A stretch of DNA of 35,224 nt from Salpingoeca rosetta (taxonomy: Eukaryota; Protista; Choanoflagellata), in contig JAWQFM010000032.1 of assembly GCA_033442325.1 (NCBI GenBank), positions 76,413 through 111,636 of the forward strand. The letters run 5' to 3'. Below are positions 25,355 through 35,078 of the stretch, one piece after another. Both the position numbers and the translations under genes were made by a program. A model generated the notes under the pieces. That model made no database searches, was not told the origin of the DNA, and saw only the letters and a list, made by a program, of their open reading frames with translations. Within the stretch, counting starts at the first letter, position 1. Each line of letters begins with the position of its first letter.

Positions 25355-28300
25355 CTACGTTAACATGGTGTCATCATCACTGTCATCGTCATGACCATCG
25401 TGAACATTGGTGGTGTCATCATTTTCCTCAAACACGCTGCCATCGCCAGCACTGCTGTGTGTGTGTGTGTGTGCGCGCGCGAGTGTGTGTGTGTGTGTGC
25501 GCGCGCGAGTGTGTGTGTGTGTGTGCGCGAGTGTGTGTGTGTGTGCGAGTGTGTGCGTGCGTGCGTGCGTGTGTGTGCGAGTGAGTGAGTGAGTGTGTGT
25601 TTGTGTGGGTGTGTGTTTGTGTGAGTTTGTGTGAGTTTGTGTGAGTTTGTGTGGGTGTGTGTATGTGAGTGAATGTATGCCCATTCGCACAAACTGACGC
25701 ATTCGCATGTTGAAAGTAATAGTTGCAGCTGAAGCATAGCACGAGCACAATACATCTGTACATCTGCACATCAGCAAACCCTGTCTCTTCTTTTTGCGAC
25801 TCACTCGTCCGCCATTGGCCCCTCCCAGACGGGGTTGTTGATGGTGAGCGATTGTCTGTTGCGGTGCTCATGCACGTCCACATCATCGTCATCCGTCTCC
25901 AAGTATTCCGCCGCCGCCATGCGTGCATATCCACGCGTGGACCGTCGTGGGCAGAACGACCCATCAGCGCGCTTCGACACTGCAAACCACGTGTCGCAAG
26001 CAACGGAGTTGTTCGTGGTTGGTGGATGGAGGTGAAGACAGCTGGTATCAGCTGGCTGGTGCACGAGCATCACCACAGCACACACTTATATGCGCATGCA
26101 CACACACGCACGTGTACGCACGCACACGCACGCACACACACACACATCTCAACGCACACACGCACATGTACACACATCTCAACACACACACAATGCACAC
26201 GTGCACTGGACTCACAGTATGCGATGATAGCGAGAACGACGATGATGGTTCCGATAATCACGGCGGCCATCACGCCTCCGCGCTGTGCTCTGCTGAGGGC
26301 GTGGTGAGCATGTGCAGGCGTCTCTGTCGGCTCAGCCCCACTCGTCACCGGGCCTGTCGCTGTCGCGGATGTAGGTGGTGCTGATGCGGTCGAATGCAAG
26401 TGGTGCGTGGTCGATGTGGTCGATGTGGTGGTGGTTGAGAAGTCACCTGCTGTTGTTGTTGGTGTGGTTTCAATGCTCGGGACGAAAGATGATGTAGTTG
26501 ATCGTGTCGATCGCATGTTGCTGCTGCTGCTTGAAGTAGCCGTGGTGGTGGTGGCGGTCGTCGTCGTCGTTTGGTGTTGAGTGGTCGTTGCCGCAGCCAT
26601 TTCACACTTGTTCGTCGTTGGGTTTCGTCTCGTTCCCTGCAGGCACACATCGCCCTCTGTGACGCTTTGAATCGCCAGTGTCTCCGCCCCAAACGAGAGC
26701 GTTCGCAACTCCGACAGCCTGCGGGAATGTGTGTGTGTGTGTGTGTGTGTGTGTGTGTGTGCGTGTGTGTGCGTGTGTGTGCGTGTGTGTGTGTGTGTAT
26801 GTGTGTGAAGGGGTGCGCGGCAGGAGACGAGTTGCGACAACAACAGCACACACATACACATGTACACAACGCACAAGCGCGTGCAGAACACACACAAGCT
26901 ACTCGCACACACACACACACACACAGTAAACGACTGACTTGTTGACGATGAGCGTGGAGGAAGGGAGATCTGCTGATTGCAACGTGACATGAACCGAAAC
27001 ACCAGCACCGCGTGCTTGCACAATGTACACGCTCGACACGTCGTCATTCGAAACGCCAACGCCACGCAATGCGGTGGACACACGGTCCAGCACATCCAAT
27101 GTGAAGTCTTCGCCACTGCTCAACAGTGTTGAAATGTGCCTGTCCGAATACTCCCCCGCGCCGATTCTGCATACGCGCGCACGTGTGTGTGTGTGTGTAT
27201 GTGTGTGTGTGTGTGTTTGTGTGTTGTGAATGTGTTTGGAGGGTTAGATCCGGTGAGAGGAGAGACTGCAGTCGTGATGCAATACGAGAGCACAAAACAA
27301 AGCAGCAAACACACAAACTCTCACACGCATACAAAAACACACGCATACATGGCCCCAATGACGTACACGAACGAGAGTGTTTCCAGGGCTGCACCGCCCG
27401 TGAAACGCTGGTTTGTGTTGACGGCTCCGAATGTGTTTGGGAGCGGGCGTGATGCCCACGAAAAGTCGTGGTACGACGACCCAACGCCACTGCTCGCAAT
27501 TGGTGGGGGAGAAGTTGTTGGAGATATTTGGTGCTCGTTTGTCAGGGTTACGTGGGGGATGGGGTGACACACAACATACAAAGTACGCACGCATGCACAC
27601 ATACACACACACAAAAAAGCTACGCACACACGCACACACTCGCACACTCGCACACTCACACACTCACACACTCACACACTCACACACTCACACACTCACA
27701 CACTCACACACTCACACACTCACACACTCACACACTCACACACTCACACACTCAAACATGGATGGCGGCAGACGATCACTTGGCATTCACGTGCTTCGTG
27801 CACGAGTGGACGTACGTGAGCTGAAGCGAGTAACCGCGCGGTGTGCCGCTCCTCTCCTGAACGCCAATGTCTTCACTCTTCATCCCCTTTGCGGGGCCCT
27901 CGCTCGCAACGAAGCTGCCCTCGTAGCTCAGGAACTGCAGAACCTACTCACGCGCGAGGGCGTGTGTGAGAATGCGTGTGCACAAAAGTGTGACGGTGAG
28001 CATGTGTGCGTCATATCATGTAGCGTGCATGCATGTGTGTGTGTGTTATGTACTCTGCGCGCGTGTGTGTGTGTGTGTGTGTTATGTAAGCTGTGTGTGT
28101 GTGTGTTATGTAAGCTGTGTGCGTGTGTGTGTGTGTGTGTGTGTGCGTGTGTGTATGCGTGCGTGTGTGTATGTATGTATGTATGTGTGTGCGTGTAATG
28201 CGGTTGACATCCTGCAAGACTGCGTCATCATTGCTGTGTCATCCTCACCTGATTGGTGTCGTCGATAAGCGCAAAGCCGTCGGCGTAGCTCCCGCCATTC

Positions 28301-34300: not shown

Positions 34301-35078
34301 GTGAATGTGTCCACGTGCAATACTTCCCGCTAGCGATGCACACGCCCACCTCCCCAACCGCAACCACACCACAACTGCCAACCCCTTCAATACTGTCAAC
34401 TGCATCCACCACCACCGCCACCGCAACCACCACCGCCGCCAAGACAACAAGTTGTACCATCGGCAGCCTTCTTGTCGCTATTATCGTTGACCGCCGCATA
34501 CGCCGCTGCTGTTGCCGTGGTCGCATGGACCGATTGCCCACTCGTCGTCCACGTGCCGCTGGTCAACGCAAATGCCAGCATGCCCTGAATGGCGAGCGGG
34601 TAAAGGCGTTGTGGTCGAGGGCGTGGTGTGGTGTGGTGCGAGTGGCCAAGTGAGACGGAGACGAGGGAGACAGAGAAAGAAAGTGTGAGGCGAGGGAAGT
34701 GCAGCGAGCACGGCTGTGTTTGCACAAAGGAAGTGTTGCTGCTGGACGCAAAATGTGGCAGAATGCCAAAGGCCGCACTTGTGCTGCCTCTTTTGTTGTA
34801 TCTGATCGTTCGCTTTCGTACGCGCGCGTGCATGCCACTGTTCACATGATGTAAGATTACCCTGCGAATGAGCTGGTAGATTTGGAAGTCGTCCTCATTG
34901 CCATGGTTTGTGGAAGGTTCACAGCCCTCAAACGAAATGCTGTCCACGGCAACGGCAGCAGAGGAGTGGGCGTGGTCCGGACCGCTCACGAAATCGCCGA
35001 AGAATTCAATTTGGAACGGGAGAAGCGGGTCATCAAGGTCCTTCAACGAAACCGTTGCTTCCACCCACTCGTCGCTGC
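25355..35078 (-). CDS. Large type I membrane receptor, 5'-partial: MAM (C-terminal end), ConA/LamG-like, DNRLRE/CBM96-like, 3x FN2, MEGF10-type EGF repeats, lamin-tail-like domain, SEA-like segment, Thr/Ser mucin stalk, TM, cytoplasmic tail. Exons 35078-34861, 34584-34458, 34204-33840, 33581-33474, 33266-33107, 32744-32377, 31968-31657, 31361-31298, 31022-30904, 30754-30600, 30390-30085, 29776-29640, 29382-29081, 28893-28745, 28517-28444, 28310-28249, 27943-27816, 27489-27367, 27166-26939, 26718-26216, 25979-25805, 25451-25355
   Basis: 22 exons join in frame through GT-AG introns of matching phase. MAM end [14 protein letters not shown]2 CVFPF/CAFPF/CKFPF...WC...[39 protein letters not shown]-like [50 protein letters not shown]. 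The ConA-like and SEA-like calls are tentative. Confidence 0.85.
27640..27753. repeat. (CACACTCA)n octamer tandem repeat, intronic
   Basis: Directly visible. Confidence 0.9.
29823..29942. repeat. Long pure (TG)n microsatellite, intronic
   Basis: About 120 nt of uninterrupted TG. Confidence 0.95.
32226..32349. repeat. (ATACAC)n hexamer microsatellite, intronic
   Basis: Directly visible. Confidence 0.95.

Follow-up and report, generated by a model that had tools for sequence, protein, structure and literature searches.

Gene Structure and Transcript Evidence

The window analysed here is a stretch of 35,224 nucleotides from the choanoflagellate Salpingoeca rosetta (G000:C32:76413-111636, in a 55.4-Mb genome of 68 contigs), and its minus strand carries the 3′ part of a large gene for a chimeric surface protein. 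The region from 35078 to 25355 supplies the last 1426 codons of a single gene, which has many exons, is expressed and encodes a very large type I membrane glycoprotein. The layout is an ectodomain string of lectin-like and ligand-binding modules, followed by a Thr/Ser stalk of the O-glycan type, a single transmembrane (TM) helix and an acidic cytoplasmic tail of 91 amino acids (aa) (Table 1). The gene model was built from stop-to-stop segments with a frame-aware search for donors and acceptors, and was then refined with two homologues and RNA. The resulting minus-strand model contains 22 exons with AG/GT at all internal boundaries and one open reading frame (ORF) of 1426 aa. An acceptor for exon 2 at 34558 was rejected because it broke the frame, and 34584 was adopted from the homologue alignment, while Pfam matches to YxzE, SelP_N, Mucin and Zip on raw ORF pieces were disregarded as noise from intron read-through. 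The annotated protein of the S. rosetta locus itself was never among the matches in the protein databases searched.

A first-pass annotation, made from the letters of this DNA, had described one spliced, in-frame product here. The unbroken frame, the GT-AG introns, the RNA joints and the same order of modules in the homologue ORFs all agree with it, and the modules it listed, as well as the strings YARM and NNPVW and the acidic end, are all found in the ORF. The single gene and transcript therefore stand as described, but what was described is just the C-terminal portion of a far larger protein. Likewise, its picture of an animal-like scaffold with two added modules holds in that both modules are bacterial in type, but understates the size of the protein.

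Table 1. Features of the gene within the window; aa numbers refer to the 1426-aa ORF.
Feature	Position	Strand	Basis
Exons 1-6	35078-34861, 34584-34458, 34204-33840, 33581-33474, 33266-33107, 32744-32377	-	
Exons 7-12	31968-31657, 31361-31298, 31022-30904, 30754-30600, 30390-30085, 29776-29640	-	
Exons 13-18	29382-29081, 28893-28745, 28517-28444, 28310-28249, 27943-27816, 27489-27367	-	
Exons 19-22	27166-26939, 26718-26216, 25979-25805, 25454-25355	-	
Probable MAM C-terminal piece (aa 1-52, ...SISFEGC) and linker	34861..35078	-	Exon aligned to P0134 154-219
ConA-like (galectin-sized) beta-sandwich, aa 73-236, two exons	33840..34584	-	Fold of homologous model
CBM96/DNRLRE-like beta-sandwich, bacterial type, aa 237-530, four exons	31723..33581	-	phmmer and fold
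Insertion of ~85 aa with Cys, inside the CBM96-like module	32413..32670	-	Eukaryotic copies only
FN2 x3 (aa 539-585, 606-650, 664-709), each intron-split	30258..31698	-	Pfam fn2
EGF repeats, laminin/SCARF1/Tie2 type, about five, aa 719-908	29096..30230	-	Pfam; junctions 29640/29382 and 29081/28893 in RNA
LTD-like, ExeM/NucH N-terminal repeat type, aa 914-1080, five exons	27402..28893	-	Four introns RNA-confirmed
Conserved membrane-proximal module, then small Cys pair, aa 1093-1208	26598..27165	-	Aligned to P0114 1778-1893
Thr/Ser-rich mucin-like stalk, aa 1209-1316	26274..26597	-	Composition; within RNA-covered exon 26718-26216
TM helix, aa 1317-1335	26217..26273	-	Read from sequence; TM at equivalent place in L004
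Cytoplasmic tail, 91 aa, three exons	25358..26216	-	Junctions 26216/25979 and 25805/25454 in RNA
YARM	25918-25929	-	Tail
NNPVW	25825-25839	-	Tail
Acidic end, DDTMLT before the stop	25358-25402	-	Tail C-terminus
Stop codon	25355-25357	-	End of 1426-aa ORF

RNA was aligned to 25250-29815, using two runs of stranded raw reads (X21 and X22) and two runs in the form of transcript contigs (X4 and X5). The last 11 junctions, from exon 11/12 to the final exon, are all confirmed by the stranded reads and transcript contigs. The joints are 25979/26216, 26717/26938, 27166/27367, 27489/27816, 27941/28247, 28310/28444, 28517/28745, 28893/29081 and 29381/29639, together with the final joint, 25805/25454, which creates the acidic end of the tail. 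At the joint upstream of 29776, the loose letters of the RNA are the reverse complement of the exon that ends in ...ADCNPVTGE at 30085. In the contig pieces this junction (30085/29776) had looked non-canonical, which was rejected, as the aligner had overrun 5 nt into the intron with one mismatch. The first mates lie nearly all on the plus strand, which fits minus-strand RNA in a standard stranded library.

Longer transcripts connect these exons to those further upstream. A transcript contig of 3899 nt (run X4) crosses twelve exons, eight as listed pieces and the rest via joints. Another contig, of 8490 nt, has just 1256 nt at or below 29781, and its next letters match the ...ADCNPVTGE exon; as the in-window exons upstream of 29781 total 2302 nt, about 4.9 kb of this contig must lie beyond the window. 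Of the words of 29200-35100, a fraction of 0.39-0.45 also occurs in RNA-like runs, against a predicted exon share of 0.44. The 8.5-kb contig, this word share, the unbroken frame and the collinear homologue ORFs all argue for the predicted upstream 11 exons. A CA microsatellite lies at 29823-29942.

Some positions in the RNA alignment differ from the assembly. At 27154-27166, reads and contigs contain three extra bases (GCA on the plus strand), equal to one Ala codon (IGAGAEYSD in place of the assembly's IGAGEYSD), and reflects either an error in the assembly or a polymorphism between strains. Within the intron 25980-26215, 46-58 reads per run end at 26174 with identical loose letters, GCTCTCTGCTCAGT, and at 26162-26177 a depth of about 120 is accompanied by G>A and T>C differences. 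A similar sequence elsewhere could be the source of these reads, or a minor alternative exon. At 28373-28376, in the intron 28311-28443, nearly all reads on both strands show T>C and T>A, and coverage on the antisense side is 2-3x.

Homologues and Extent of the Gene

A phmmer search with the exon 31968-31657 against 1.84 billion representatives gave 3250 matches, and a search with the LTD-like segment of a homologue, P0134, gave 967 proteins of 690-2198 aa; of each, the best 120-150 matches were inspected. Among the 3250 are two proteins from Logan assemblies, P0114 (2082 aa) and P0134 (1256 aa), which contain three fn2 domains, EGF repeats, MAM or LamG, and a C-type lectin domain. Both are collinear with the S. 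rosetta gene exon by exon, in uninterrupted ORFs. In a directed search of 5.8 billion proteins (690-2198 aa), these were the only two that share the combination of FN2 with a CBM96-like module bearing the insertion listed in Table 1, which points to a very rare architecture. The first-pass annotation had not recognised this architecture from any named protein, in keeping with that result, and a literature search found no description of the S. rosetta gene or of its architecture.

P0114 is encoded at locus L004 (SRR29340314; L004:8007-14255), where a single 6.2-kb exon takes the place of the part that has 21 introns in S. rosetta. L004 has introns upstream of this exon and one inside the TM segment, which identifies it as eukaryotic genomic DNA. 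Intron density thus differs greatly within one gene between L004 and S. rosetta. The automatic gene call at L004 reads through the TM intron and produces a false hydrophobic C-terminus.

Directly after the window end lies a run of N (35225-37930; C32:111637-114342). Across this region P0114 reads '...RIAWAVIGGGGGDWVNARVSL', and the matching S. rosetta residues, 'KIVWAALGG', are found at 38247-38191, with the next residues from 35076. The gap therefore falls within an intron, with no residues apparently missing. Collinearity with P0114 and L004 extends about 18 kb past the window end, to about C32:129760. From the N-terminal side towards the window, the upstream exons encode EGFs, then FN2 with a SUEL-type lectin, then two LamG_3 domains and a C-type lectin, and finally two MAM pieces followed by a Cys-rich module. 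In total the gene is at least 28 kb long, its product would have roughly 3000 aa or more, and the window accounts for at most the C-terminal half of this.

These data bear on the possibility that the chimera is an artefact of mis-assembly, bacterial contamination or read-through of two or more genes. The N gap does abut the window end, and unstranded contigs can merge neighbouring transcripts. However, strand-specific spliced reads cross all junctions between the EGF, LTD, stalk, TM and tail segments, the bacterial-type domains are split by GT-AG introns, the order of modules recurs in single ORFs of two other organisms, and the gap is intronic with no residues missing relative to P0114. An artefact is hardly credible on this evidence, and has already been largely refuted.

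Modules of Animal-Receptor Type

At the N-terminal end of the 1426-aa region, the first-pass annotation had named a MAM domain. What is present is probably its C-terminal third, recognised through the alignment with P0134, and not a whole MAM. P0134 matches Pfam MAM with 30.8 bits (cut-off 26.4) at profile positions 85-155 only, and neither the window exon nor the upstream pieces (CDFE...C.W; FWYNMRG), each taken alone, have a Pfam match. The window would then contain the last third of a MAM that is split by inserted modules.

The next module is a beta-sandwich that is best recognised by its fold. No sequence family in Pfam matched it, and Atlas feature searches scored just 0.80-0.83. An AlphaFold2 (AF2) model of P0134:205-400 has a 117-residue core with a predicted local distance difference test (pLDDT) score of 75-90, its first 65 residues being unreliable. 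VIA-align of this core (Z 12-13, root-mean-square deviation 2.5-2.9, 114-117 residues) finds galectins, GH32 C-domains and legume-lectin-like folds, and the ConA-like beta domain proposed earlier is supported by this model of the homologue.

The three FN2 domains and the EGF repeats can be read from the window itself. Pfam fn2 (PF00040, gathering 22.2) matches the exons of the second and third FN2 with 41.4, 36.7 and 36.4 bits (E 1.4e-10, 4.3e-9 and 5.1e-9), and the first, split by an intron, gives a partial match (E 0.051) with the four-Cys pattern C...C...C...C present. In the homologues, fn2 is found three times at E 1e-28, in three stretches, with 99 bits. The count of three FN2 is thus upheld, with profile matches above threshold on window exons. 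The EGF region matches Pfam EGF_laminin (9e-8) and EGF_Teneurin (2.5e-6), and the nearest solved sequences are 6u11, SCARF1 (7.6e-12) and Tie2. The EGF type, which the first-pass annotation had compared with that of engulfment receptors, is closest to the scavenger receptor SCARF1.

A CBM96-Like Module of Bacterial Type

Between the ConA-like domain and the FN2 repeats lies a beta-sandwich whose best phmmer matches, among the 3250, are multi-copy, bacterial-type proteins with 40-45% identity. The two halves of the module correspond to contiguous halves of a 180-aa bacterial unit, which occurs in 2-5 copies in bacterial proteins that also have PKD domains and sorting tails of the type IX secretion system (T9SS). 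Named bacterial carriers of this unit are a heparin-lyase-I-family protein, a beta-helix protein and a 'chitinase'. The insertion of about 85 aa is in none of the bacterial units compared, and is conserved in P0114 and P0134.

The AF2 model of the module has a pLDDT of 77, falling below 50 in the insertion, which is disordered. The best Foldseek matches are 8wab, a chondroitin-sulfate-binding carbohydrate-binding module (CBM), and 7vbo, an alginate-binding CBM (E 1e-4 to 2e-4, prob 1.0, TMt 0.58-0.63), at a sequence identity of 10-12%. Pfam and NCBIfam gave no DNRLRE (NF033679, cut-off 34 bits) or CBM96 match on P0114, P0134 and most bacterial units; one bacterial relative reaches 19.7 bits for DNRLRE, under the cut-off. 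A search of Protein Data Bank (PDB) sequences with the profile of the module found no match. Judged by the predicted fold, "CBM96-like fold of bacterial type" is justified and "DNRLRE family member" does not. The first-pass label of a DNRLRE-like domain can therefore be kept for the fold resemblance and the bacterial type, but not for family membership.

An LTD-Like Module of Bacterial Type

The second bacterial-type module lies between the EGF repeats and the membrane, and had been described earlier as resembling an LTD of secreted bacterial proteins, a likeness that is borne out at up to 59% identity. Among the 120 matches listed from the search with the P0134 segment, the named ones are ExeM/NucH endonuclease, DUF5689/T9SS and predicted extracellular nuclease, with 41-52% identity over 93-97% of the query, and the best-ranked matches include Gammaproteobacteria, Bacteroidota and Chloroflexota. 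One named ExeM/NucH nuclease, P0196, has a Pfam LTD (PF00932) at 20-118 with 47.8 bits (cut-off 34.3), and this stretch aligns with the P0134 domain at 45-47% identity. Aligned over 162 columns, the window domain and the bacterial P0168:29-191 share 59% identity, and P0168 sits among matches named ExeM/NucH nucleases. The score of the window domain is 182 bits against bacterial copies, compared with 135 against P0134 and 85 against P0114. The first LTD exon of the window alone gives 19.5 bits with Pfam LTD.

The domain belongs to the same type as the N-terminal repeat of bacterial ExeM/NucH nucleases. Pfam matched neither an Exo_endo_phos nor an Endonuclease_1 catalytic domain on any exon of the window or on P0114 or P0134, and the bacterial LTD repeat found nothing meaningful among PDB sequences. 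The membrane-proximal module that follows (aa 1093-1208), conserved in P0114, has no Pfam match and no usable Atlas match.

Origin of the Bacterial-Type Modules

A six-frame search of the 55.4-Mb genome found the CBM96-like and LTD-like modules at no other locus. Maximum-likelihood analysis placed the three eukaryotic copies in one group, against 75 bacterial units for the LTD (Shimodaira-Hasegawa-like approximate likelihood ratio test, SH-aLRT, 85) and against 44 bacterial units for the CBM96-like module (SH-aLRT 99). The trees took the best-ranked bacterial matches, are unrooted and have long eukaryotic branches. The first-pass annotation had proposed horizontally acquired binding modules, with per-domain phylogenies as a check; that proposal is strengthened, as the modules are single-copy and bacterial in type, and their eukaryotic copies cluster amid the bacterial ones. 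Bacterial contamination is ruled out, since the LTD-like domain is cut by four introns confirmed in spliced RNA.

The best reading, inferred from sequence comparison and well supported, is that both modules were acquired from bacteria by gene transfer, followed by domain shuffling. Because the modules are single-copy, the eukaryotic copies group together and the four LTD introns are verified by RNA, one acquisition per module is the simplest reading. Each module would have been acquired once from bacteria, before S. rosetta and the two homologue carriers diverged, then fused into a holozoan-type scaffold of MAM, C-type lectin-like domain (CTLD), LamG, FN2 and EGF, with introns gained later in the S. 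rosetta lineage. Extensive gene transfer into choanoflagellates is already known (PMC7971027, PMC4046809), and the idea that transferred domains are shuffled into multidomain genes has been raised before (PMC7971027).

Alternatively, the modules could have been present in eukaryotes from early on, with vertical descent and loss from most lineages. Eukaryotes have an ancient LTD fold, and several of them have LTD-like proteins other than lamins (PMC5630835); the inspection was limited to the best 120-150 matches per search. Vertical inheritance is nonetheless very improbable, given that a bacterial repeat, at 59% identity, is closer to the LTD-like domain than its eukaryotic homologues are, and that the modules are single-copy, with two other eukaryote-type carriers among 5.8 billion proteins and thousands of bacterial carriers.

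Stalk and Cytoplasmic Tail

The mucin-like stalk has Ser or Thr at 54 of the 109 residues counted. Beyond the TM helix, the tail has 24 Asp and Glu against 8 Lys and Arg. The L004 tail, with the TM intron removed, ends '...PSYENSDSESDVELE...NAEDDNNDADDAMLIPGNLDV' before the stop. Both tails have a Tyr with an acidic cluster after it and, more distally, a second acidic cluster that ends DD[AT]ML. The L004 end, DADDAMLI, fits [DE]XXXL[LI], and the ML pair in S. rosetta would be at best a variant of DXXLL.

The first-pass annotation had read YARM, NNPVW and the acidic end as endocytic sorting signals. The strings are present and the acidic DD[AT]ML is conserved, but YARM and NNPVW are not, and the end is not a canonical dileucine. 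Judging from its sequence, the acidic tail is plausibly a sorting signal. A candidate partner is encoded in the genome, where VHS and GAT domains adjoin at G000:C35:371899-373415 on the minus strand (the sole GAT match in the genome), in a gene that is predicted to encode an adaptor of the GGA or Tom1 type.

Function of the Protein

The gene is probably best explained as a mosaic of holozoan type that carries bacterial modules and forms a multivalent surface receptor with an acidic sorting tail. Four features favour a receptor: the EGFs are nearest to SCARF1, the CBM96-like fold is nearest to CBMs for chondroitin sulfate and alginate, the tail is conserved, and a VHS and GAT gene is present. 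The protein might, tentatively, be a multivalent surface receptor for polymeric ligands, with acidic polysaccharides, other glycans and possibly nucleic acid on bacterial prey or debris as candidate ligands. The conserved acidic-cluster 'DDxML' motif in the tail may direct internalisation or sorting. From these sequence features we infer a possible endocytic or prey-receptor role.

Several points weigh against this explanation. YARM and NNPVW are absent from L004, the sole homologue with a readable tail, and their occurrence by chance is expected in a tail of 91 aa, as is a YxxPhi match at such a length. DDTMLT is neither a canonical DXXLL nor a [DE]XXXL[LI], having Met in place of the first Leu and Thr after the Leu. 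Both libraries of hidden Markov models missed the proposed CBM96/DNRLRE relation of the eukaryotic sequences. As for the origin, P0114 and P0134 may join by long-branch attraction in the LTD tree, and the trees, unrooted and with long eukaryotic branches, give little hold on the donor lineage or the timing of transfer. The survey of eukaryotes covered the best-ranked part of the 967 and 3250 matches, and the LTD-like proteins reported from several eukaryotes (PMC5630835) count here as well. Direct read evidence covers 25250-29815, the upstream 11 exons being predicted.

The same ectodomain could serve in adhesion. As an adhesion or matrix-anchoring receptor, the protein would bind the cell's own matrix, its theca or sister cells, with lectin modules on self glycans such as chondroitin sulfate and with homophilic contacts through MAM and EGF. 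The module set (MAM, LamG, CTLD, SUEL-type lectin, EGF and FN2) is typical of matrix and adhesion proteins, the nearest fold to the CBM96-like module, 8wab, binds chondroitin sulfate, and chondroitin sulfate lyases and matrix remodelling are treated in a paper on horizontal gene transfer in S. rosetta (PMC7971027). On the other hand, a static anchor needs no conserved, sorting-type acidic end to its tail, and the nuclease-type LTD has no known matrix-binding role. We regard this role as possible but doubtful.

An intracellular role can also be considered for the tail. CI-MPR, sortilin and SorLA have acidic-cluster dileucine sorting signals, and FN2 also occurs in CI-MPR. A cargo-sorting receptor of the sortilin or mannose-6-phosphate-receptor kind would cycle from the Golgi to endosomes or food vacuoles and back, with glycosylated hydrolases or matrix components as cargo. 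The tail end does resemble the acidic-cluster dileucine ends of CI-MPR and sortilin, and in S. rosetta a run of Asp and a Ser stand by a hydrophobic pair near the C-terminus, as DADDAMLI stands in the homologue; the motif is conserved and a VHS and GAT gene is present. The S. rosetta pair is ML and not LL, however, with Thr after it, and the motif is thus non-canonical. Surface exposure is the usual setting for a long mucin stalk and for more than 20 lectin-like or EGF modules, and Pfam found no MRH or Vps10 domain in the exons or the homologues. Such a role is accordingly improbable. The receptor, the matrix or adhesion anchor and the Golgi-endosome cargo receptor seem inseparable by sequence tools.

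Within the favoured explanation of a multivalent surface receptor, a more specific and unlikely proposal is that a bacterivorous protist recognises its prey with modules drawn from the bacterial world to which the prey belong, a polysaccharide-binding module and a substrate-holding nuclease repeat being mounted on an animal-type scavenger-receptor scaffold. Bacterial surface polymers or extracellular DNA would be captured and, through the conserved signal in the acidic tail, sent on to the feeding pathway. If true, this would be a first prey or scavenger receptor to be defined at the molecular level in the animals' sister group.

Comparison With Known Receptors

The nearest precedent for such an origin is teneurin. 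For teneurins, descent from a bacterial toxin-like gene has been proposed, its fusion to EGF repeats having taken place in an ancestral choanoflagellate (PMC3278476, PMC6297184). Teneurins and the S. rosetta protein are both transmembrane mosaics of the choanoflagellate and animal lineage that join a bacterial-type module to EGFs, and Pfam EGF_Teneurin matches the S. rosetta EGFs. Teneurins are type II proteins with shells of YD-repeat/Tc-toxin-like kind, whereas the S. rosetta protein is type I with a CBM96-like module and a nuclease-type LTD, and no YD/RHS part was seen in the S. rosetta gene.

The class F scavenger receptor SCARF1/SREC-I and MEGF10/Draper/CED-1 are, like the S. rosetta protein, type I proteins with tandem 8-Cys EGFs of the same sequence type (E 7.6e-12 for SCARF1). 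By analogy with SCARF1-like receptors, the S. rosetta protein could plausibly bind ligands that are polyanionic or particulate. In contrast to these receptors, the S. rosetta protein has only about five EGFs among many other modules. It also differs from MEGF10/Draper/CED-1 in its tail, which is short and acidic rather than long and Ser/Pro-rich and has no NPxY or YxxL, NNPVW not being an NPxY, and the EMI domain, a hallmark of these receptors, had no Pfam match on P0114 and P0134. The mannose receptor family (MRC1, Endo180, DEC-205 and PLA2R) shares FN2 and CTLD (the latter upstream in the S. rosetta gene), a single TM and a short tail with endocytic-type motifs. Its members have a ricin-type domain, one FN2 and 8-10 CTLDs, while the S. 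rosetta gene has three tandem FN2, one detected CTLD and many unrelated modules, and scans of its exons and of the homologues gave no match to a ricin-type domain, so that it falls outside this family. In the homologue, a single Lectin_C match was seen upstream.

On the bacterial side, ExeM/NucH endonucleases and DUF5689/T9SS proteins share the unit of 160-170 aa at 47-59% identity. It occurs in two or three N-terminal copies in bacteria, but as one non-catalytic repeat with four introns and no nuclease domain in S. rosetta. With the CBM96/DNRLRE structures (7vbo, 8wab) the gene shares the beta-sandwich fold, and has bacterial relatives in proteins of polysaccharide-lyase type; the identity is 10-12%, and the 85-aa insertion is limited to the eukaryotic copies. 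The secreted C-type lectin Rosetteless was rejected as a counterpart, as its architecture is different and the S. rosetta protein has a TM.

On this reading, the gene would be a transcript-verified case of domain-level gene transfer, with single-copy modules of which one is up to 59% identical to bacterial proteins. Spliceosomal introns now interrupt these modules, which are joined to FN2, EGF, MAM and C-type lectin domains of the animal-receptor kind. The gene would provide a second kind of example, beside teneurin, of surface-receptor assembly before animals arose. Salpingoeca rosetta is genetically tractable, and the gene is a concrete candidate for knock-out and uptake assays.

Neighbouring Gene

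A convergent gene lies at 22635-24515 on the plus strand, with a tyrosine-kinase-like catalytic C-lobe followed by long runs of poly-Asp, poly-Gly, poly-His and poly-Thr. In run X4, the 3.9-kb contig reaches 854 nt below 25250, and the 3′ ends of the receptor gene and of this kinase-like gene may therefore overlap.

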